The position numbers and the translations under genes were made by a program. Under the pieces are notes generated by a model. The model did no database searches and had not been told where the DNA came from. It was given only the letters and a program-made list of their open reading frames with translations. DNA of 63,385 nucleotides, from positions 48,200,445 through 48,263,829 of the forward strand of contig NC_068999.1 of assembly GCF_001194135.2 (NCBI RefSeq), written 5' to 3'. The DNA is from Octopus bimaculoides (Eukaryota). This document shows positions 5,377 through 62,512 of this stretch, one piece after another (the first letter of the stretch is position 1; every line of letters begins with the position of its first letter).

Positions 5377-35665
<30,289 letters not shown>

Positions 35666-45705: not shown

Positions 45706-46927
45706 ACTTACATTGTATGCATGTATGTAATGGGCTTCTTTCAGATTTCATCTATCAAATTCACTCACAAGGCTTTGATCAGCCTGGGACTACAGTAGCA
45801 GACACTTGGCCAATGTGTCATAATATAGTGGGACTGAACCCAACTTAGCTATGTGTCTTTTAAATTTAAAAAAAAATCTGTTCATTTAACAAAAAATATT
45901 TTATTCACAAAATTTAGTACAAAAATAAATAAAATTTCATCATTCAAGCATCTACATAAATAATTTCACCCTTTTTGAAACCAACCTGCTTGAGGATGCC
46001 CTTGGTTTTGTGATACAAAGTTGCCTTAATGTGATTTACATTAAAATCTTCAATTTGGAATTTTATGTTAATTTATGTTCCAAATATCAGGTTTATAATG
46101 ACAGAGGGGTTTTACACAACTCTTACTTGCTTTCCTAATTAATTGGAATGAAGTCTGTGTATGCAAGGTTGGCTCAGTAACAATTTGTATAGAAGAACAA
46201 TCAGTTGTCTTTGGTATATAACTAGTGCTTGTGGTATTGCTCCTCTCTCCNNNNNNNNNNGGTATATAACTAGTGCTTGTGGTATTGCTCCTCTCTCCTA
46301 GAATTTAAACTGTAGAGGTGAAGTCACCTCTAATGGGATTTGAAACTGGAATCCTGGGTGTATGAGCAAGAGAGAGATGGAGGTGGGGGCTCAGTGATAA
46401 ATCCCATTCAGTATTTACTTTTATTATCAGCTGTCTTAGCTTTCTCCTAAGTTTACAATGTATTCTTACTTAAACACAGGATTACAAATTCATAGAGACG
46501 GGGAATGATAGTCCAAAGGCAGGAAGAGCCAAAAGGAAAGAAGTGAATTGGTTTGAACTACAAATCACAGAATTAAATTGAAGCTTGAAAGGAGTTTACA
46601 GTTTGCTAGTTAAGTGAGGATGATTTAGTTTGACTTTATACGAATCAACAACATTATAAAAGAGAGTTATAGATAATTGAATCAACTACTGAATGAAATA
46701 AGTACACTGAGCCAATTAAGAAGCCACTGAGTGGTTGTTCAAACTGCTAGATATAGCAGCCAGATCTCCCTCAATTTACACTTTATCATCTCAAAAAGAG
46801 AAAGAGAGGATACATTAGACTAGAGGTTCTCAACCAGGGTTCATATGACCCTTGGGGATCCATATAAGATACTGTTGTTAAAATTTATGTGCAATAAATT
46901 GGTGATATTTCTACAATATGTAAAATA

Positions 46928-48655: not shown

Positions 48656-49930
48656 TTATTTTAAATGTGAAATTTCATTAGAAACATATCCAAGAAAACT
48701 TTCTGTTTTGACATAATCTAATGTCTCTGTTATTTGTTCTGTGTCTTGTATTTTATCCATTTCTTTATCTGGTCTTTGCAAAGAATCTGATGGTTTATGA
48801 ACATTAGCATTTACAAGATTACAAGAACTTGTTGGATTTTGAGATATTCCTTGTCTTTCGTTTTGAATATTTTTGTCTTGAACCTCATCTAATGAAGATT
48901 CCATAGCCTCTACAACGTGTTCATGTGGTACATAACCATCATTACAATTCACTTTTACATTTTCTTTGTCTGTTCTACCATTAAACTTTGAAGTTCCTAT
49001 CTGATCACTTTCTTTATTTTCAGTTTGTAAAATTTGTCCTTTCAAAGGTTTACTTTTATAAGAGTTAGTGCTTTCTTCGAGGAATCCTGAAATATAATCT
49101 GGTTCAGAGAATATATAATCTGTGATACTCCCATTACTGTTTGTATTTTTACATGGAGGAATAGAATTAGATACAAGTTTGTTAAGATCATTTGGTTCAT
49201 CAACATAATCTGGGCTACTGGAAACAATATTCATCAAGTTACCATTCACACATGTGGGAACTGACACACTGAAAGAACTATCTGGTTCATCAACATAATC
49301 TGTTCTACAGGAGACATTTTCCTTCATGTTACCATCCGAAAATGTGGGGACTGGCATAGATAGAAGTTCACTGGAAGAACTATCTGGTTCATCAACATAA
49401 TCTGTTCTACAGCAGACATTTTCCTCCATGTTACCATCCGAACATGTGGGGACTGACATAGATGAAAGTTCACTGAAAGAACTATCTGGTTCATCAACAT
49501 AGTCTGTTCTACTAGAGACATTTTCCTTCATGTTATCATCCGAACATGTGGGGACTGACCCAGGAGACCTACATGACCGCCTATAATCTCCTGATGCATC
49601 AATATAGCCTGTCTTATTGGAAACATTTTCAATATCATCTATTTTACTCCATAGAAAGGCAGTTTTAACATTGATATTCTCAACATCCTTTGATTTGTCC
49701 AGAAGTTTTCCTGTCAGTTCATTAACTTGTAAATAATCAGGAAAATGTATTGTTGACTTTAAAAATTCTTGACTTGGAAAATGTGATTTTTCAGTCCCTG
49801 ATGAATTGTCGAAACTATAATAACCTGATTCACCAGTTTGATGAAACGTGTATTTACTACCATCCATTAGCTGATTTTCACCCTCTTTAATTTTTTCGTA
49901 ATTGTAGTCCAGATCAGTGTAACTGGGAAC
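48656..49930 (-). CDS. Gene B terminal exon: cytoplasmic tail (VPSYTDLDYNYEKIKEGENQLMDGSKY...GYVSNEISHLK*) with internal tandem repeat
   Basis: Minus-strand acceptor ttttccttttgatcttcacag| extends ORF 48656-49867 by 21 codons; 1275 nt. Confidence 0.88.
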   Translation of the reverse strand, partial: VPSYTDLDYNYEKIKEGENQLMDGSKYTFHQTGESGYYSFDNSSGTEKSHFPSQEFLKSTIHFPDYLQVNELTGKLLDKSKDVENINVKTAFLWSKIDDIENVSNKTGYIDASGDYRRSCRSPGSVPTCSDDNMKENVSSRTDYVDEPDSSFSELSSMSVPTCSDGNMEENVCCRTDYVDEPDSSSSELLSMPVPTFSDGNMKENVSCRTDYVDEPDSSFSVSVPTCVNGNLMNIVSSSPDYVDEPNDLNKLVSNSIPPCKNTNSNGSITDYIFSEPDYISGFLEESTNSYKSKPLKGQILQTENKESDQIGTSKFNGRTDKENVKVNCNDGYVPHEHVVEAMESSLDEVQDKNIQNERQGISQNPTSSCNLVNANVHKPSDSLQRPDKEMDKIQDTEQITETLDYVKTESFLGYVSNEISHLK

Positions 49931-52900
49931 CTGTGAAGATCAAAAGGAAAATGACATACATTAATATATGATAGAGACATAAGGAAAACAGTGTCTATTG
50001 CTTTAGGAGAGGCTATTGTAGAAGCAGTAAAGGAAATTAGCTGAGAGAGAAGACAGCATATTTGGAGAATGTCTCCAGATAATGAATTTATGCCTATAAA
50101 TTGAGTGACCTTTCTCTGAATGTGATCCAGAATGTGTGTGTGTGTGTGTGTGAAGCAGCCATGCTGTTCCACATGTTGAAACAGTATTCCGTTTTTTTTA
50201 TGTCTCACATAGACTACATAGTTGTCCATGAATTATTGAAGGATATTGTAGCTCTGTATGTAGGTGTGTATGCTTGCATATTAGCGAGTTTGGTGGGGTG
50301 GAAAGGGATAGATCTGGAGGAGATTGTTTACCTGGTGGTGCGCAAGGTGAGAATGGATGAAGTCGGAGGCTTTCTCCATAGGAGTACTCTTGATAGAATC
50401 TTCAGGTTTGAGAAGCAGAAGAAAGAAGGATTCTGAAAACTTGATGGAATTCCTTTTGGTAAAGAACCAGAAGGACCAGCTGCATTTTGTGGCGCAAGAG
50501 AGATCGAGGGAAATATGATGCACAAAGGAATCCTTCATGATTTGGATACGGAAAGTTCTGTCACCAAAATAGGTTCAGTGTCTTGTCAGCCATGCTGAAT
50601 CACCAGCACGTAAACAGCCAAGCCCAATCATCTCATGTCACTTTATCGTGGCTTCTATGATATATTATACGAGAAGACCTGTCAAGCCAAGTGAAATTGT
50701 AGTTGTGCCAGTGGTACGTAAAAAGCACCCTTTGAATGTTGGGCCTCATGGGGGCAATGACAAGTTACCAAGACCTTTGGCAATATACTGTGCTACAATC
50801 TTGTGATCATGAGTACAATACTTGAACAACTAAGCCAACTGTCTAAGGTCCCATCTTTAATCCCTTGCTTTTTATTCTAATCCACGAGACTAGATATCAC
50901 TGGGAACTATTCTATGCTGATGACATATTTTTCAGTGCAAAATCTGCTAAAGAAAAACAGAAGTTTGAAACTTGGCAAGTGTGGGATTGAGTTAAAAAAA
51001 AACATGAAGCTTAACAAGACCTAAAGTAAAATAATAATTAGGAACAAGATCTAAGTGAAATAACTCCAAGAGAAGGATCCATTCTCAATGTGTGAGCCAA
51101 GAAGTAACAGTTGTAATTTAACTTTGTTATAATGAGAGAAAGGTCAAAGGTTGTGAATTGGCAGAATTGTTACCATACTGGACAAGAATGCTTGGCAGCT
51201 CTTTAAGCTCTGAGTTCAAAATGCTGTGAAGGTCAACTCTGCCTTTCATCCCTCCAAGAGTCAATAAAATAGGTGGCAATCAAGCACTGATGATCAAGAT
51301 AATCAACTTAACCAAACCCCTTAAATTGCTGGTCTTGAGCCAAAATTTGAAAGCATTGATAAAGAAAGGATTATAGCTGAGAGCAAGCAGTAAATCATTT
51401 ACCCTGTCTATTGTGGTAACTTCAATTGCTGTAACATACTTGCAGTGGCTGAAATAAATGAACAGAGAACATGACATTTATAAACGGCCATTGTTTTTGC
51501 ATCATAGTCATGAAGGATTTGTGTTACATTAAAGAAATTACATTTATTGTTGTTGTTGGCACTCCGTCGCTTACGACGTCAAGGGTTCCAGTTGATCCAG
51601 TCAACGGAACAGCCTGCTTGTGAAATTAATGTGCAAATGGCTGAGCACTCCACAGACATGTGTACCCTTAACGTAGTTCTCGGGGATATTCAGCATGACA
51701 CAGAGTGTGACAAAGCTGACCCTTTTGAATTACAGGAACAACAGAAACAAGAAGAAAGAGTGAGAGAAAGTTGTGGTGAAAGAGCCTCGTGGAGCTTTAG
51801 GGGTTTTCGCTCAATAAACACTCACAACGCCCTGTCTGGGAATCGAAACTGCGATCCTATGACCGTGAGTCCGCTGCCCTAACCAGTGGGCCATTGCGCC
51901 TCCACAAATTATGGCTATTCAAAAATAACAATAACATTCATCATCATCATCATCATCGTTTAACGTCCGCTTTCCATGCTAGCATGGGTTGGACGATTTG
52001 ATTGAGGACTGGTGAAACCGGATGGCAACACCAGGCTCGTCTAACACAATTTTTGTCCTTGGGTAGCAACTGTTATTTCATATTTGCTTACCCCTAGTAA
52101 GTATGAAAAACAGCCAATATTTCCTTTAAACTTTGCTTTTGTTACATTTATTAAAAACCCAAAGAATCCCTCTTGACATATGGCTATGATGCTCATTCAC
52201 TATTCCAGTATGAGAGACGCCCATACTGTCAACCACTAAGGGACATGCTCAAGTGGTTACAGTCAACCAACTGGCAAGCAAATCTGTGATACTGAGCAGA
52301 ATATTTGTTATAACGATATTTCTGCTTCAGCAACTCAGTGCTGAATCTGTCTGAAATGTAATGGAAAATAGTCAGTTTCAAAACATTGTTGTCCAGGTCA
52401 CAAAGGCAAACTTTGAAACGAATAATAGTCATTTCCTTTGATTCTTAGAGAGAAGCAAATAGGAAATAACACTTACTGACCAAAGACAAAACAAAATAAA
52501 AATTTTGTTTCACAGTGTAAACAATGACAAAATAATATAGGCACAATCGTGGCTGCCTCAGTTTCCATCTACCAAATTCAATCACAAGGCTTTGCTCAGC
52601 CTAGTGCAACATTACAAGACACTTGGCAAAGGTGCCGTGCAGTTGGACTGAACTTAACCTTGCATTGTTGGGAAGAAACCTTCTTAAACCACAGACCAAA
52701 AAAGAGATGTCTGCTACTGTATGGTGGTATTGTTTGCAAGCCTCCCAGTTGACCTCTGTTACAGAGATTCATAAAGATTCAAATGCTTCTGAACACCTGG
52801 TGCTAGCTTCCTTCCATGGAGACCTGTCTTGAGTATATGTTAGCCGGGGGAGAGGAAGAGGCAGAATGGGTAAGGTTGGGTAGTGGACTCAGCCCAATTA

Positions 52901-55900
52901 TAAGCTGATCTTGCAATCTTTTAAGGTTGCTTTCAGTGCATCTTTGAATTTTTTTTTTTAAACAGGTGTACCAACATTGTAGCCTCCATTTGAAAGCTTA
53001 GAATAGGTTACATCTGATTGTTGACAGTCAGACAGTCCTGACAGCATGTATTGTATGAACGTGTGTGTGTGTGTGTGTGTGTAAAAAGGAATATAAACAT
53101 TTAAAACTTACCTCCTAATATATATAAACAAGCCTGATGTAATTAATAGAACTGTCGCCAACAACATGAACGAATATAGGTAAATCTCACTCAAATCTGT
53201 AAAAGTAAAGATGTTCATTAGAGCATATAATTTTTGCACATTACCATCACTATTTGATGACCAAAATTTCAAACATTCAGATAAAAATTTCTCCCTTTAT
53301 ATTTATATACAATATTCTGTAGTTGTTTCTATTTGGTGGGAAGGGTGTATTTCTTTTCAGTGTTACTCAAAACCAGATTTTCCATTTCCCATATAAGTTA
53401 ATTTATCTCAAGCTATTAGCATGAAAATTTGATGAACTTTACTTTAATAATTTTTGCTCTACATGAACTAGGTCTTCAACCATTTGTAGCCACATGGACT
53501 GGGTTGCTCACATATTAAATGTAACTGTCATTAACATTATGTAAAACTGCCAATTAGTTAACCAATTATATCTGTTATCTGCAGCCTTACAATATGTAAA
53601 AATAAAGTAGGATATGAAGTTTATACCATGGGTTTCATGTAGACTACCTGGAAAAGATAACAGGACACAGTTCCAATGTATCCTCCATTGGACACTATGA
53701 TAGATTCATATAAAATTAGGTGTAAGGATAGATAAGCTTTGTTTTTGGAGAGATTAAAATTTTACAGTGTACTGTTTGATATGGTAATACAGAAGAATCT
53801 AAAAAGAGCCCTTGTAATTTTTCCTTCCATTCCAATAAGAGACAAACTAAACGACAATGCTGAATGATGTATAAACAAAATATTAGATTCTAAATCAAGG
53901 GTTCTCAACCATTTTTTATCTATGGACCCTTTGATTACTATTTTATTCTGGTGGATACCCATAGCCATTCAATGTAACCAGTTTTATAGAACCATGTTTC
54001 AAAATTCCAATTAATTTGTGTAGGTTGAACTACATAAAATGTTAGAGAAAGAAATCTAGAGATTTCCCAATACATACATCTGAAACAAAATATTTTCAGG
54101 GGTTCTGAAAATACTATTGTGGATCCCATGTTTACTATTTTATGGCATGGACCCTAAAAATTTTATATGGACCCTGGATGAAAACCCTTGTTCTAGATAT
54201 TCCATAAAGTATTCTCTTTACCTGTGTCTTTAGTTACTCCTGTTATGGTGTCACTCATTAGACTTAGTCCATGCTTTGTCTTCACTTGTATACATACTGA
54301 ATATTCTGTGTCTGGTGATAGGCCATTGATGATGACAACATTTTCAACTGCTTTTGTCTCATTCACTGGAAATTCTTTCCTCTTACCTTTAAGCAATTTT
54401 TAAAATGAAGAAAGGACAACATTTTACCATTTCTTTATATTTATTTAGTCAGTCAGAGAATATCTTTAGGAAAAACAGGAATACCACATCTTTCATTTCT
54501 TATTTTCCATACCAAATATAGGTTCAAAGAATGATATCCAACAACTAGAACAACAGCAGCAATAAGATCAAGTGGTGAGGGAGATCTGTTTATACCAAGG
54601 CACAAGCCCTACTTCTCCCCCTCTGTAAGGGACAAAATGCATTTCCTTTTGATTTGGTTAGAATTTATTTTCTAAATGTTAGGTGTAAATGAAAAACTTT
54701 TGGTCTGGCAGGATTTGAACCTAAAACCATAAAGCACTCTATTGGGTGGTTGATGTTAAAAACCCATGCCAAAACAGACACTGAAGCCTGGTGTAATCTT
54801 CTACCTGGCCAGCTCTTGTCAAACCGTCCAACCCAATGCCAGCATGGAAATGGACATTAAATGATGATGATGATGGTGACAATGATGATGATTCTACTGT
54901 CACAACCACCATTCTAAACAGTGTTTCACAACAATAAGAACATCGACATCACCATCAACATCATCATCAGTTAATGTCATTTTTTCTCTGTTGGCTTGGT
55001 TGGTTCAACAGGAGCCAACAAACTAGTGGGCTGCACCAAGTTTCAATGTCTGCTTTGGTATGGTTTATACATTTGGATGCATTTCCTGTTGCCATCCACT
55101 TCACAGAGCGTACTGACACCAGAGTGTACCTTTTTTTTTTTTTTTTTACCTTGGCACCAGCAATGATGGAGTCACCAAGTACCTACAAGGTAAAACCTCT
55201 CAACTGAGTAGGGTATTGTATTGAGGGGATGGGAAAATATGATAGAGGAACAAGAGCAGGTGGCTTGCCCATTTAGAAAGAGACAGACAGACAGACACTG
55301 CTGAGGGCAAAGTGTGAGGTGAATATGAGAGAAAGTATAAGGAATGCAACGAGACAGTTAAAAAAATAGAATACTCACCATTTTCACAATTCTTACCCTC
55401 TGCATAATGCAGCACATAAGCAATGGGTATACCATTCCAGTCCGAACATTGCAGAGTAGGCCATGTAAGAGAAAACTTAGTTTCTGACCAATAAACATAA
55501 GGTTTCTGAGGTTTTATGGCTGAAAGAGTGTAAAATATTTGTTATTCTTACTTTTATTCTTATCATTATTAATATCACTATTAGCATGTTCACAGTTTTA
55601 TTAATGATCGAAAATGGTATATCAAAACAACGAGAGAAACTATTGTTAAATGTCAGCAGTCAAGTAAATAAATGTATATACTCAGAACTGAAGCACTTGA
55701 AGAATCAGATACGGTTGTAACATATCAGTTGAAAATATTGTCCACATGATTGATAGATGTGTGTGTGTGTGTGTGAAAACACATACATATGGTGGTCTTC
55801 TTTTAGTTTTCATCTACCAAATCTACTCACAAGGTTTTGGTTGGCCTGCCCTAAGATATAGGGCAGGCCAAACAAAAGCCCTATATTTCATATTTCATTC

Positions 55901-58900: not shown

Positions 58901-60647
58901 TAATAGCTGTTTTATATTATCTTCCTTCTGCATACATGAGTATGAAAGTTATGAATTAGCTTATGATTTAATATATGATTGTTAAGAATTAATTAAAAGG
59001 AGTACTTTAACTGTTTGATGACTTTCAGAATACTACTCGCAGTCATAGGATCGCGGTTTCGATTCCCAGACGTTGTGAGTGTTTATTGAGCGAAAACACC
59101 TAAAGCTCCACGAGGCTCCGGCAGGGGATAGTGGCGAACCCTGCTGTGCTCTTTCACCACAACTTTCTCTCACTCTTACTTCCTGTTTCTGTTGTGCCTG
59201 TAATTCAAAGGGCCAGCCTTGTCACACTGTGTCACGCTGAATATCCCCGAGAACTACGTTAAGGGTACACGTGTCTGTGGAGTGCTCAGCCACTTGCACG
59301 TTAATTTCACAAGCAGGCTGTTCCGTTGATTGGATCAACTGGAACCCTCGATGGACAATGGACATTATATGATGATGATGATGATGATNNNNNNNNNNNN
59401 NNNNNNNNNNNNNNNNNNNNNNNNNNNNNNNNNNNNNNNNNNNNNNNNNNNNNNNNNNNNNNNNNNNNNNNNNNNNNNNNNNNNNNNNNNNNNNNNNNNN
59501 NNNNNNNNNNNNNNNNNNNNNNNNNNNNNNNNNNNNNNNNNNNNNNNNNNNNNNNNNNNNNNNNNNNNNNNNNNNNNNNNNNNNNNNNNNNNNNNNNNNN
59601 NNNNNNNNNNNNNNNNNNNNNNNNNNNNNNNNNNNNNNNNNNNNNNNNNNNNNNNNNNNNNNNNNNNNTGAAACTCTTTATATAAAGAGTCAACTATTAA
59701 ATTGTTTGAATCCAGGCATTGTTCAGTGTTATTAGTTGATGAACTTCCATCAATGTATTGGACACAGTATCCTGTTAGAATATCATTCCTGAATTCCACA
59801 GGTAAACTCTGTGAAAAAGACAAACATTAACAATAATGTTACAATATCCTTTGATTCATTCAATACTTTCACCTCCAACCCCATCTCTAACCATTTCACA
59901 TTCTCATCAACTTATCTCCCCATCCACCTTTCCCAATTTTTTGTCTGTATTCCCTTTTAATACTCGCCATTTTGATTCTTTTAAAAAAACTGGCACTCCA
60001 TCAGTCATGACCAACAATTGTTCCAGCTGATTTAATCAATGAAACAACCTGCTTGTGAAATCAACATGCAAGTGGTTGAGCACTCCACTGATATGTATAC
60101 CCTTAGTGTAGTTCTCAAGGAGTTTAAGTGTGACACATAATGTGACAAGGCTGGCCCCTTGAAATACATGGGCAACTCATTTTTTACCAACTGAGCGAAC
60201 CAGAGCAACATGAGACAAAATATCTTGCTCAAGGACACAATTCATCACCAGGAGTCAAATTCATGACCTAATGACCATGAGCTCAATACCTTGACCACTA
60301 AACCAGGCACCTTCATTTCTTTCCTTTTTTTTTTTTGTATCTTGAGAGTATTACAACACACCATTATTTACAGTAGCGATACTTTCAGACTATCAAGTAC
60401 TGCATTAGTTTGCAATGCAACATTCAATGCTTACTATGATCAGATAATTTGAATAGGGATAAATGGTACAGTCTTTGGTACTCTTGTGCTGTTTCTACAA
60501 CTCAATAGGATTTAACATTCAGTATATACTTTGAAAAAATAGTTCAATTTACCTGCCAGTATACTGTGATACATCTTTGGTTTGTTGGGTGGGGACAACT
60601 CCATTCATAATATCGAAAATAAGATGTTTTGACTGGATAAGGAATGG
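48656..60647 (-). CDS. Gene B (visible spliced span): paralogous gp130/Domeless-like receptor; N-terminal exons lie beyond the window end or in gaps
   Basis: 9 exons with GT-AG sites and the same phases as gene A exons 7-14 and 16; 19/48 identities in the 141-nt exon pair. Confidence 0.85.
49190..49640 (-). repeat. Coding tandem repeat of about 102 nt (34 aa) with a DYVDEP core, 4 good units plus 1 diverged (GYIDAS)
   Basis: Tyr-core anchors at + positions 49201, 49291, 49393, 49495 and 49600 (spacings 90, 102, 102, 105 nt, all frame-preserving). Confidence 0.92.
50250..50580 (-). mobile_element. LINE (CR1/L2-group) ORF2 linker relic
   Basis: SLDLSCATKCSWSFW..KRNS.KFSES.F.LL.KPEDSIKSTPMEKASDF; motif recall only. 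Confidence 0.4.
51403..51448 (-). CDS. Gene B juxtamembrane exon (HCKYVTAIEVTTIDR)
   Basis: tttatttcag| acceptor, |gtaaat donor, 46 nt phase 2-0 as in gene A exon 14. Confidence 0.8.
53112..53196 (-). CDS. Gene B transmembrane exon (DLSEIYLYSFMLLATVLLITSGLFIYIR)
   Basis: tttacttttacag| acceptor, |gtaagt donor, hydrophobic helix, phase 1-2. Confidence 0.88.
53896..54190. mobile_element. hAT (Charlie-like) MITE, 295 bp, 31 bp from a gene B donor site
   Basis: TIR caagggttctcaacc / ggatgaaaacccttg; TSD ttctaaat / ttctagat (nTCTAGAn-like). Confidence 0.8.
54222..54386 (-). CDS. Gene B FN3-5 second half (GKRKEFPVNETKAVENVVIINGLSPDTEYSVCIQVKTKHGLSLMSDTITGVTKDT)
   Basis: FN3 LxPDTEYxV signature; YxVCIxVxT..SLMSD shared with gene A exon 12. 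Confidence 0.9.
55379..55519 (-). CDS. Gene B FN3-5 first half (SIKPQKPYVYWSETKFSLTWPTLQCSDWNGIPIAYVLHYAEGKNCEN)
   Basis: ctctttcag| acceptor, |gtgagt donor, 141 nt, aligns without gaps to gene A exon 11. Confidence 0.9.
55930..56850 (-). mobile_element. CR1/Jockey-group LINE reverse transcriptase relic
   Basis: DVIYL..FDKVNHG, S.V.QGTVLG, ASYADDTKV (YADD at 56047-56058). Confidence 0.85.
56940..57190 (+). mobile_element. Penelope-like GIY-YIG endonuclease C-terminal relic
   Basis: YIESTTRKFHICIKEHMHRDTSI*KHLRKC...NRINLRIMEALLI. Confidence 0.75.
57315..57465 (-). CDS. Gene B FN3-4 second half (DEGEWITVANEGYVLVNYSFEQLPVFAAHVSTEEGRSSLTKAECIFMPRK)
   Basis: cttttag| acceptor, |gtaatt donor; LTKAECIF shared with gene A exon 10. 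Confidence 0.9.
58119..58338. mobile_element. Intact piggyBac-like MITE, 220 bp
   Basis: TTAA-CCCTTTAGCATT ... AATGCTAAAGGG-TTAA. Confidence 0.88.
58729..58877 (-). CDS. Gene B FN3-4 first half (PRKPTAVYVSKISDKMYNVSWLIEQPQESVNVTVFWCLNQITSSKIECR)
   Basis: ttttattcag| acceptor, |gtaagt donor; VYV..YNVSWL..NVT shared with gene A exon 9. Confidence 0.9.
59035..59350 (+). mobile_element. SINE S2, 5'-truncated
   Basis: Reverse complement of 51547-51904 and 12284-12675. Confidence 0.85.
59669..59808 (-). CDS. Gene B FN3-3 second half, partial (SLPVEFRNDILTGYCVQYIDG...SLYKEF, runs into the N gap)
   Basis: tttttcacag| acceptor; GYCVQ and SLYKEF shared with gene A exon 8; 3' part hidden in gap 59389-59668. 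Confidence 0.88.
60553..60647 (-). CDS. Gene B FN3-3 first half (IPYPVKTSYFRYYEWSCPHPTNQRCITVYWQ)
   Basis: tttctcacccag| acceptor, |gtaaat donor, 95 nt; YYxWxC...CITVYW shared with gene A exon 7. Confidence 0.9.
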
Positions 60648-62512
60648 CTGGGTGAGAAAAAAAGATGAAATACATTGATTGGTTATAGAAGAGATAATAT
60701 GGGATAAAGACATAGGGAATTTTTATGGGGATATATCATGTAACAAGACTTGCCAACTTAATATACTAGAATAGGAAAATGTGCACAGAAAAGATAATGA
60801 TGCTGATGATGATGATGTATTGTATTGGAAACTCATCATATTTCTTTCTTTCAATCAATCAATCAATCATAAAATTCTTAGGATCCAATGGAATCAAGGT
60901 ATTTAAATAACAAAGGCACCAAAATAGAGTTGGGAATAGCATACCTGTGTACTAACAGTGTGTATGGATACTTATAGACTTACTCAGCCCACCTGTATTA
61001 TCATTTACATCTATTTATCTATCTCATAATCATTTAACATCCCTTGTCCATGCTGGTATGGGTTGCACTGCTGGCATTATATACATATATACATATATAT
61101 ATATATAATTTAGAGAAAAACCACTATCAAATAATTCAGTAATGAAGAATATAATTCATACCCTCCAGAAAATAAATATATCATAAACACCTTATTCTAA
61201 AATACAATAAAATGCATAAAAAATAACTAGTAAATGGTATAAGAATGACTATGCATGTTTCGTAGCTATATTTTCAAATAGATAACTAATAAAACTAATT
61301 CGATTATTAATTCTATTAATAATCAATGTTAATATTAAATGTTATTCGATCATTTGTTTATTTATTGTTAAAATAAGTATTTTTTATATATTCATTTGAT
61401 ATTTATTGTAAGTTACAATATGTAAATTGGTTTATTTTTATTATTTTTATTTCATTTTAGACCTAACAAGTGACTATTTTTGAATAGATTTAATTATAGA
61501 TCGATTTGATTATATTGTATTGTATACATATATATAATACACATATGTGTGTCATTTTAACGATGCGTATTGTTGCACCTTGTTTACCATTTTTGTCCTT
61601 GTTCTTTTGCCACGTCATGTACCCAGTTATGTATCTATATGTACATGTGGATGAACGTATATACATACATGTACATATATATGCATATACTCATATATTG
61701 TTTGTATCACGACAGAACACACGCGTTACCTTTATACAGTAAGTTTTAACTATTTTTCTAACGCGACTCTCTCTATTTCTATCTCCCCCTCTCATTCTTC
61801 CCTCTACTGTTCTTCGNNNNNNNNNNNNNNNNNNNNNNNNNNNNNNNNNNNNNNNNNNNNNNNNNNNNNNNNNNNNNNNNNNNNNNNNNNNNNNNNNNNN
61901 NNNNNNNNNNNNNNNNNNNNNNNNNNNNNNNNNNNNNNNNNNNNNNNNNNNNNNNNNNNNNNNNNNNNNNNNNNNNNNNNNNNNNNNNNNNNNNNNNNNN
62001 NNNNNNNNNNNNNNNNNNNNNNNNNNNNNNNNNNNNNNNNNNNNNNNNNNNNNNNNNNNNNNNNNNNNNNNNNNNNNNNNNNNNNNNNNNNNNNNNNNNN
62101 NNNNNNNNNNNNNNNNNNNNNNNNNNNNNNNNNNNNNNNNNNNNNNNNNNNNNNNNNNNNNNNNNNNNNNNNNNNNNNNNNNNNNNNNNNNNNNNNNNNN
62201 NNNNNNNNNNNNNNNNNNNNNNNNNNNNNNNNNNNNNNNNNNNNNNNNNNNNNNNNNNNNNNNTCATTTTAACGATGCGTATTGTTGCACCTTGTTTACC
62301 ATTTTTGTCCTTGTTCTTTTGCCACGTCATGTACCCAGTTATGTATCTATATGTACATGTGGATGAACATATATACATACATATACATATATATGCATAT
62401 ACTCATATATTGTTTATATATATATATATATATATATACATATATTTTTTTTATGTTTCAGTTGCAAAGCTGCGGTCATGCTGGAGCACCACTGTATATA
62501 CACATATGTGTA

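Follow-up and report, generated by a model that had tools for sequence, protein, structure and literature searches.

A 102-nt in-frame tandem repeat multiplies a DYVDEP tyrosine motif in the cytoplasmic tail of an octopus receptor gene

In this study, we analyzed a stretch of 63,385 nucleotides of the Octopus bimaculoides genome (NC_068999.1, positions 48,200,445 to 48,263,829; hereafter the window) and found that a 102-nt in-frame tandem repeat multiplies the motif DYVDEP in the cytoplasmic tail encoded by the last coding exon of gene B (LOC106877108), on the minus strand. The array is a coding minisatellite that lies within the final exon of a gene for a single-pass receptor and belongs with the tandemly amplified short linear motifs. 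The motif is probably a docking site whose number evolves quickly, and a multivalent phosphotyrosine docking platform appears to be the best reading of the array, to which we give a probability of roughly 0.55. An earlier interpretation made from the letters of the window alone (the sequence-only reading) had proposed such a platform. That interpretation is partly supported, in that its genetics agreed with our analyses, and its biochemistry is a prediction.

Results

The open exon comprises 425 codons (48659-49930, minus strand) and a stop codon at 48656-48658, the whole last coding exon extending over 48656..49930 behind an acceptor cag at 49933-49931 and coding for 424 residues of the cytoplasmic tail. 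Its translation is 100% identical to the C-terminal 425 residues (230-654) of the NCBI protein of LOC106877108 (P0001, 654 aa), and base composition gives an estimate of ~1e-13 for an open frame of 425 codons arising by chance at 37% GC. Tandem Repeats Finder (TRF) reported a period of 102 with 2.9 copies, 92% matches and a score of 503 at 49267-49559, a score that excludes a chance origin of the repeat, and a repeat search returned four copies with spacing 90/102/102. With the unit consensus as query, blastn matched U1, U2 and U3 at 96, 94 and 99%, respectively, U4 at 81% over 72 nt (E=2e-14) and U0 at 75% over 40 nt (E=0.016). The same query had no match beyond the array anywhere in the 63-kb window, and a dispersed repeat or transposon fragment was therefore ruled out.

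Three young units, delimited with TRF and blastn, are 90-93% identical: U1 (49454..49555, VPTCSDDNMKENVSSRTDYVDEPDSSFSELSSMS) and U2 (49352..49453, VPTCSDGNMEENVCCRTDYVDEPDSSSSELLSMP) are 102 nt long, and U3 (49262..49351, VPTFSDGNMKENVSCRTDYVDEPDSSFSVS) has 90 nt, or 30 codons, four fewer. They are flanked by older copies, namely U4 (49160..49261, VPTCVNGNLMNIVSSSPDYVDEPNDLNKLVSNSI), located by the repeat search and blastn; the old diverged U0 (49556..49657, GYIDAS, ..KIDDIENVSNKTGYIDASGDYRRSCRSPGS, ..DDIENVSNKTGYIDAS..), whose orthologue in O. vulgaris reads GYIDEP; and U5 (49070..49159, PPCKNT..TDYIFSEPDYIS, PPCKNTNSNGSITDYIFSEPDYISGFLEES, PPCKNTNSNGSITDYIFSEPDYIS..), the sixth and most diverged copy, which is common to the paralogue and O. 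vulgaris. All copies lie in frame on the minus strand and each holds a Tyr, the stretches around the motif Tyr including RTDYVDEPDSSF and ..TDYVDEPDSSFSELSSMSVPTC.. in the array units. The unit lengths of 102/102/90/102 nt are all divisible by three, and no copy interrupts the reading frame, likewise in O. vulgaris. U4 shares 61-68% nucleotide identity with U1-U3, differing from them at 32-39% of sites, yet its 18-nt DYVDEP core is unchanged and identical to that of U2 and U3.

These results agreed closely with what had been described from the letters alone. The intragenic amplification, with four recognisable copies and a diverged GYIDAS copy, was recovered by TRF, the repeat search and blastn; the claimed frame-preserving spacing of 90/102/102/105 nt matched exactly the positions of the motif Tyr codons (49207, 49297, 49399, 49501 and 49606). 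The 20 cytoplasmic tyrosines counted there comprise 19 in the last exon and one, in KYV, in the juxtamembrane exon, and the further motifs DYIF, DYIS, GYVP, DYVK and GYVS are all present in the tail. As also stated there, the neighbouring paralogue gene A (LOC106877106) has no such repeat; its tail at 34760-35665 on the plus strand is without tandem repeats.

A profile search identified LOC115222071 as the orthologue of gene B, represented by P0025/P0031 in O. vulgaris (76% identical) and by P0028-P0030 and P0032 in O. sinensis. LOC115222231, with 2 units, had been a candidate and was rejected, the profile search having shown it to be orthologous to LOC106877032; together they constitute gene C (LOC106877032 in O. 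bimaculoides, LOC115222231 in O. sinensis and O. vulgaris). Gene B contains U0, three young units, U4 and U5 in O. bimaculoides, and U0 (GYIDEP), six young units, U4 (DYVDEL) and U5 in O. vulgaris, which bears out the earlier suggestion that copy number could differ between species. At least four young units are present in O. sinensis, where every model ends inside the array; gene C has two units (DYADEP or AYADEP, then DYVDEP) and U5, and gene A lacks the unit. No N occurs in the 55.6 kb of the O. vulgaris locus (L001), which shows period 102 with 5.9 copies at 96%, in an assembly built on Oxford Nanopore Technologies (ONT) long reads (PMC10700109). Since the array is present in this gap-free locus, the long-read check that had been suggested speaks against an assembly artefact; the unit count in O. 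bimaculoides may be a lower bound, because that assembly is based on short reads.

The O. sinensis models X1, X2 and X4 of LOC115222071 (P0030, P0028 and P0032) end inside the array (...SVPTCVDG) or frameshift there, isoform X1 being separated from X2 by exactly one unit of 34 residues. Such models point to an assembly that breaks within the array, to transcripts that vary in unit number, or to the two combined. The order of the units in O. sinensis also differs from that in O. vulgaris, although the two split only ~2.5 million years ago.

Young units differ at 6-10 nt per 102 within O. bimaculoides and at 7-12 nt between O. bimaculoides and O. vulgaris, and the U4 orthologues of the two species differ at 7 of 90 nt. 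Synonymous divergence (dS) is 0-0.13 among U1-U3 and 0.23-0.51 from these to U4, with a dS between species of ~0.07-0.09. The three young units of O. bimaculoides are about as old as the species split. Furthermore, the young unit adjoining U4 is shortened in both species, which argues that an array of several units was already present in their common ancestor and pre-dates the split. The O. vulgaris units were duplicated or homogenised much more recently, u1-u3 differing among themselves by 1-2 nt and u4 from u5 by 0.

Gene conversion was detected in the same exon. Over ~48896..49194 on the minus strand (window coordinates approximate, converted from alignment positions ~56-354), gene B is near-identical to its paralogue LOC106877032, agreeing with it at 23 informative sites and with the O. 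vulgaris orthologue at 4, and the pattern is reversed on both sides of the tract (comparison with L002 46155-47021 and L001 52066-53628). At the protein level, the sequences of this tract go by species and not by gene in O. vulgaris and O. sinensis as well. Judged by its informative sites, this part of the distal tail is a gene-conversion mosaic.

Across both species, with nine young units in all, the DYVDEP core, taken as the sequence-only reading had named it beforehand, showed 4 synonymous and 0 non-synonymous changes and the other 28 codons 3 and 14 (Fisher P=0.006), on counts that are small and come from units that share ancestry and are not independent. By this measure, selection was shown to keep the DYVDEP residues, and linker residues to change freely. 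Between O. bimaculoides and O. vulgaris, the ratio of non-synonymous to synonymous rates (dN/dS) was 1.08 in the proximal and 0.74 in the distal part of the tail, and 0.99 over 242 codons of the ectodomain and transmembrane segment. All indels of gene B are multiples of three, and the reading frame is intact in three species; under simulated neutral substitution at the observed divergence, the last exon stayed open in only 0.5-1.2% of trials (P=0.005-0.012). An open frame is thus unlikely under neutrality, which indicates that gene B is kept and is not decaying. A dN/dS of about 1 with an open frame is characteristic of a recognition or immune receptor that evolves fast, not of a pseudogene.

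Over the whole tail, Tyr was conserved slightly more often than the remaining residues in comparisons with O. vulgaris (95% vs 84%), gene C (73% vs 62%) and Argonauta (39% vs 32%), the last with 7 Y-Y matches, a number reached by 1/200 shuffles. Preferential conservation of Tyr, the lack of which the sequence-only reading had named as refuting it, stands for the motif Tyr and its core, which are invariant in the young units, and is only marginal for the tail as a whole.

The residues around the tail tyrosines are far from random. Val or Ile occupies +1 at 11 of 20 tyrosines in the gene B tail (background 0.118, P=4e-6), at 9/18 when U1-U3 are counted once (P=8e-5) and at 9/14 in the Argonauta homologue (P=1e-5), and Asp or Gly occupies -1 at 14/20 (P=1e-8). 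All 13 gene B units of O. bimaculoides and O. vulgaris read D-Y-V, with one invariant Tyr per unit, an acidic residue at -1 and an aliphatic residue at +1. DYVDEP matches the JAK2 substrate preference for D/E at -1 and V/L at +1, and leaves the +3 and +5 preferences unmatched (PMC3078918). A YxxPhi endocytic signal, immunoreceptor tyrosine-based activation or inhibition motifs (ITAM/ITIM), an LC3-interacting region (LIR), an acidic dileucine and a TRAF2/TRAF6 site were each rejected for the core by sequence, and tyrosine sulfation was rejected because the core lies on the wrong side of the membrane. The literature searched contained no mention of DYVDEP or of the LOC identifiers of these genes.

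Other tail motifs are conserved as well. The distal GYVPHEH motif (48917..48937, minus strand) is kept in Octopus genes B and C, as is DYVKTE in the C-terminal motif pair LDYVKTESFLGY (48686..48718, minus strand), which is also found in the Argonauta homologue; both the C-terminal DYVKTE..GY[VI] and the DY[IV]FSEP of U5 are kept from Octopus to Argonauta. The STAT phosphorylation motifs have the form GY[IV]K/P, for instance GYIKTE in STAT1, GYVKPQ in STAT5A, GYVPSV in STAT4 and GYVPAT in STAT6. DYVKTE closely resembles the STAT1 Tyr701 motif GYIKTE, and GYVPHE resembles GYVPSV of STAT4 and GYVPAT of STAT6. The likeness, noticed post hoc and offered as a lead, suggests recognition by SH2 domains of the STAT type.

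When 1.84 billion representative proteins were searched exhaustively with HMMER, 16 hits were returned. All those with a source looked up (P0002-P0006, P0008 and P0009) are from cephalopods, namely Octopus, Argonauta and cuttlefish, P0007 coming from ENA without a name and P0010-P0016 having sources outside the look-up; among the sourced hits, the family thus appears to be confined to cephalopods. In full-length orthologues, a signal peptide and an N-terminal immunoglobulin-like (Ig-like) part precede several fn3 domains and a single transmembrane helix, and the tail comprises 340-540 residues. The gene B product is accordingly a type I membrane protein with the array C-terminal to the transmembrane helix, and its tail has no kinase domain, 66% disorder-promoting residues, a net charge of -37 and a mean hydropathy of -0.85. 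AlphaFold2 modelled the full O. vulgaris orthologue from a 5-sequence alignment with a mean predicted local distance difference test (pLDDT) of 32, and this model was used neither for a fold search nor for disorder.

Pfam returned generic fn3 only, with CRLF2-like_D2, DSCAM and ROS1 fn3 below threshold. A six-member family profile was colinear with gp130 over ~400 residues (145-550 vs 144-536, E=7.9e-11) and also matched LIFR (2e-9) and IL-12RB2 (6e-7), but the fn3 arrays of LAR (6e-11) and neogenin scored alike. The defining features of class I cytokine receptors were taken from PMC7444064. WSxWS is absent, the position of gp130 WSDWS reading IWNKN / LWNPP / IWNVP with only W[NS] left, and YWSD occurs only in P0008 and P0009. 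A proline-rich PxP Box1 is absent just inside the membrane, where gene B reads RSHCKYVTAIEVTTIDRVPSYTDLDYNYEKI with single prolines only, and across the six family members only one Cys is invariant in the membrane-distal domain, where class I receptors have two conserved disulfide pairs. Because WSxWS and PxP Box1 are absent and the Cys pattern is not clearly conserved, we did not file the family as class I cytokine receptors, and describe it as seemingly gp130/Domeless-like in architecture. The cytokine-receptor framing of the sequence-only reading therefore holds only in part, the ectodomain resembling gp130 and WSxWS and Box1 being absent. In place of Box1, the family has a juxtamembrane pattern I-x-I-[DE]-x-P followed by Y-x-[DE]-I, in gene B AIEVTTIDRVPSYTDLDYNYEKI (exon 51400-51477, minus strand, with family alignment A1, columns ~780-810); this pattern might be a kinase-binding or sorting element.

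A second array occurs in the family. The cuttlefish-type P0008/P0022 (Logan transcript contigs) carry a tail array of their own, about a dozen units of ~20 residues, roughly SDS[ND][GN]Y[IV]xNxxNSSELSQxx, with [GN]Y[IV] in most units and a sequence unrelated to the octopus 34-residue unit. As the two kinds of unit are unrelated in sequence, Tyr-bearing modules have been amplified independently within the family. P0008/P0022 share a 90% cluster with the Acanthosepion pharaonis protein P0021, named 'PTPRQ'. The name looks wrong, since Pfam finds fn3 only and no phosphatase domain in the cluster-mate P0008.

Discussion

We propose that a 34-codon unit has multiplied head-to-tail, through slippage in replication or unequal crossing-over, and that every copy contributes one acidic Tyr motif (R-T-D-Y-V-D-E-P) to a tail that is long, acidic, non-catalytic and of disorder-type composition. 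Once a ligand has clustered the receptor, an associated non-receptor tyrosine kinase of JAK/Hopscotch type or Src type would phosphorylate the array tyrosines and other [DG]-Y-[VI] sites of the tail. Such phosphorylated sites could recruit SH2-domain proteins (STAT, SHP2/Csw, SOCS or an adaptor), docking valency would follow from the unit number, and signalling gain could therefore shift quickly in evolution. JAK, STAT and Domeless/IL6R-like receptors have been reported in molluscs (PMC13203501).

Several points weigh against a phosphotyrosine platform. DYVDEP, with Glu at +3 and Pro at +4, is not YxxQ, YxxP, YxN, YxxM or ITIM/ITAM, and we know of no SH2 consensus that it fits. As PxP Box1 is absent, the vertebrate rule would not predict that JAK binds. 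Furthermore, the preference for Tyr over the whole tail is marginal, the core test rests on few changes in related units, and weak general constraint could account for the gene-wide dN/dS of about 1.

Some of these points would suit a constrained motif that works without phosphotyrosine, an explanation that we consider unlikely. DYVDEP might bind a trafficking or scaffold adaptor in unphosphorylated form, or be a DxxD caspase site cut between D and E of D-Y-V-D-E, with copies tuning avidity or cleavage. It would be in keeping with this that all six residues of D-Y-V-D-E-P are constrained rather than Tyr alone, that Tyr stands out so little in the tail at large, that DYVD and DYAD fit DxxD and that the known SH2 consensus motifs do not match. 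However, the common denominator across the family is [DG]-Y-[VI] with Tyr fixed, and the YxxPhi, dileucine, LIR and TRAF patterns do not fit. The caspase version fares no better, since G, K, E or A stands in place of the P4 Asp in U0, Argonauta and the O. bimaculoides paralogue (GYIDAS, GYIDDP, EYVVNC, AYADEP), and Glu at P1' is poor for caspases. The constancy of Tyr, and not of the P4 Asp, in older copies weakens this alternative.

Alternatively, the array could be neutral, a coding minisatellite whose 102-nt unit is prone to slippage and is tolerated by a permissive, disordered tail, the conservation of the motif then reflecting youth or conversion and no function. A dN/dS of ~0.7-1.1 over the tail and the whole gene, a dN/dS among U1-U3 that is not confidently below 1, O. 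vulgaris units that are identical or 1-2 nt apart and active gene conversion in the last exon are all as expected from such a repeat. We nevertheless hold it to be quite improbable, because the changes within the core are silent (GAT/GAC, CCA/CCC/CCT) and without replacement, against 14 replacements in the flanks, and because the core survives with diverged flanks in the old U4 and U0 and in the paralogue. In addition, related Y[VI]D motifs persist in Argonauta, and the frame is kept, with indels in multiples of three in three species, where neutrality would be unlikely to leave it open. An artefact of the short-read O. bimaculoides assembly or its annotation is extremely improbable. The assembly is heavily gapped (713,915 contigs overall, five N runs in the window), and the O. 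sinensis models that stop inside the array or differ by one unit suggest that it is hard to assemble and annotate. Yet the nearest gap is 2.4 kb off (46251-46260), U1-U3 differ at 6-10 positions each and are therefore not duplicated reads, the gap-free O. vulgaris locus has more copies of the same array, and short reads tend to collapse repeats rather than create them, so that four units may be too few.

The phosphotyrosine platform remains our preferred reading. A wider scenario, which we put forward tentatively from the family comparisons, is that these are lineage-restricted, fast-evolving gp130/Domeless-like receptors in which STAT/SH2 modules may have been gained and lost, with gene conversion between paralogues and arrays arising independently at least twice, as octopus DYVDEP units and cuttlefish NGY[IV] units. 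In this scenario, the family would represent a 'variable-valency' cytokine-receptor system with signalling strength tuned by the number of tail modules, and the likeness of DYVKTE to the STAT1 motif would hint that STAT docks directly.

Comparison with known systems is instructive. Like gp130, LIFR and Drosophila Domeless, members of the gene B family cross the membrane once in type I orientation and have an Ig-like region at the N-terminus, with several fn3 domains after it; the profile is colinear with gp130 D2-D5, and both have a long kinase-less tail with several Tyr motifs, which in gp130 include four YxxQ sites. Unlike gp130, the family lacks WSxWS (W[NS] only, with YWSD in two paralogue lineages) and PxP Box1, and the Tyr motifs of gp130, in contrast to the gene B array, do not stem from a recent tandem DNA repeat. 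The tail of the prolactin receptor (PRLR) contains GLDYLDPACF and PTYLDPD, and its DYLDP docks STAT5. In DYLDP as in DYVDEP, Tyr is preceded by an acidic residue and followed by an aliphatic one at +1 and by Asp at +2, with a Pro nearby, but the Pro is at +3 in PRLR and at +4, after Glu at +3, in gene B, and the PRLR sites are single-copy and non-tandem. The analogy drawn from the letters alone names a motif that is present in the PRLR tail; it is a resemblance and not evidence.

In Helicobacter CagA (EPIYA) and Chlamydia Tarp, every tandem unit has a single Tyr that can be phosphorylated, in acidic surroundings, and a copy number that varies between strains or species sets how many SH2 proteins dock. 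The gene B array shares the one acidic-context Tyr per tandem unit and the variable copy number; CagA and Tarp, however, are secreted bacterial proteins phosphorylated by host kinases, whereas gene B encodes an animal transmembrane receptor with candidate phosphorylation sites. The 48-bp repeat in exon 3 of DRD4 and the heptads of the RNA polymerase II C-terminal domain (CTD) consist of in-frame tandem copies of a short motif within an intracellular segment that is disordered, again with a copy number that varies between alleles or species. They differ from gene B in that DRD4 has proline-rich SH3 motifs in a loop of a G-protein-coupled receptor rather than an acidic Tyr motif, and in that the CTD is ancient and essential, in contrast to a family that appears cephalopod-only. 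It is therefore known that short linear motifs in disordered tails can evolve by tandem amplification, and what is new here is the occurrence of this mode in an uncharacterised cephalopod receptor family.

Apart from those of Drosophila, little is known of cytokine-type receptors in invertebrates, and to our knowledge no cephalopod one has been characterised. If the platform reading is true, the locus would provide a natural experiment, with 4 vs 7 DYVDE[PL] sites over ~34 million years and some O. vulgaris copies identical, and the long-discussed relation of docking-site valency to signalling gain would be directly testable with natural alleles. If the motif is not phosphorylated, a well-documented coding minisatellite remains. 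The locus also marks what appears to be a cephalopod-only family with a dN/dS of about 1 and gene conversion between paralogues, a combination typical of immune and recognition receptors.

Other features of the locus

The window has 37% GC and five N runs, and Rfam gave no match on either strand. Gene B spans the minus strand from at least 60657 to 48656, with approximate exons at 60657-60553, 59817-59671 (cut by an N gap), 58881-58732, 57465-57304, 55538-55362, 54387-54223, 53200-53114 (transmembrane), 51477-51400 and 49930-48656. The NCBI model begins after a gap and is truncated N-terminally by assembly gaps. The exons at 59671-59817 and 60553-60657, which are in the window and outside the NCBI model, match residues 207-286 of the O. 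vulgaris orthologue; N runs lie at 59389-59668 and 61817-62263, and the first ~200 residues fall in gaps or outside the window.

Alignment to P0001 defined both the transmembrane exon (53114..53200, minus strand, ..IYLYSFMLLATVLLITSGLFIYI) and the juxtamembrane exon (51400..51477, minus strand, SHCKYVTAIEVTTIDR), the coding part of the latter being the 3' portion of the range. A helix was predicted at the equivalent place in P0025, in a model of low confidence. Just upstream of the juxtamembrane exon, the frame (51280-51477, minus strand) reads ..SLFIYF.., an echo of the end of the transmembrane exon, ..GLFIYI, and tblastn aligned residues 205-231 of P0001 to the same region at 78%. The echo may have been left by a partial duplication of the exon or by an exon that was once contiguous.

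Gene A is complete in the window (5377-35665, plus strand) and is a convergent paralogue, tail-to-tail with gene B; its last coding exon (34760..35665) encodes a tail with GYV motifs. The third paralogue, LOC106877032, lies on the same 55-Mb chromosome record as genes A and B.

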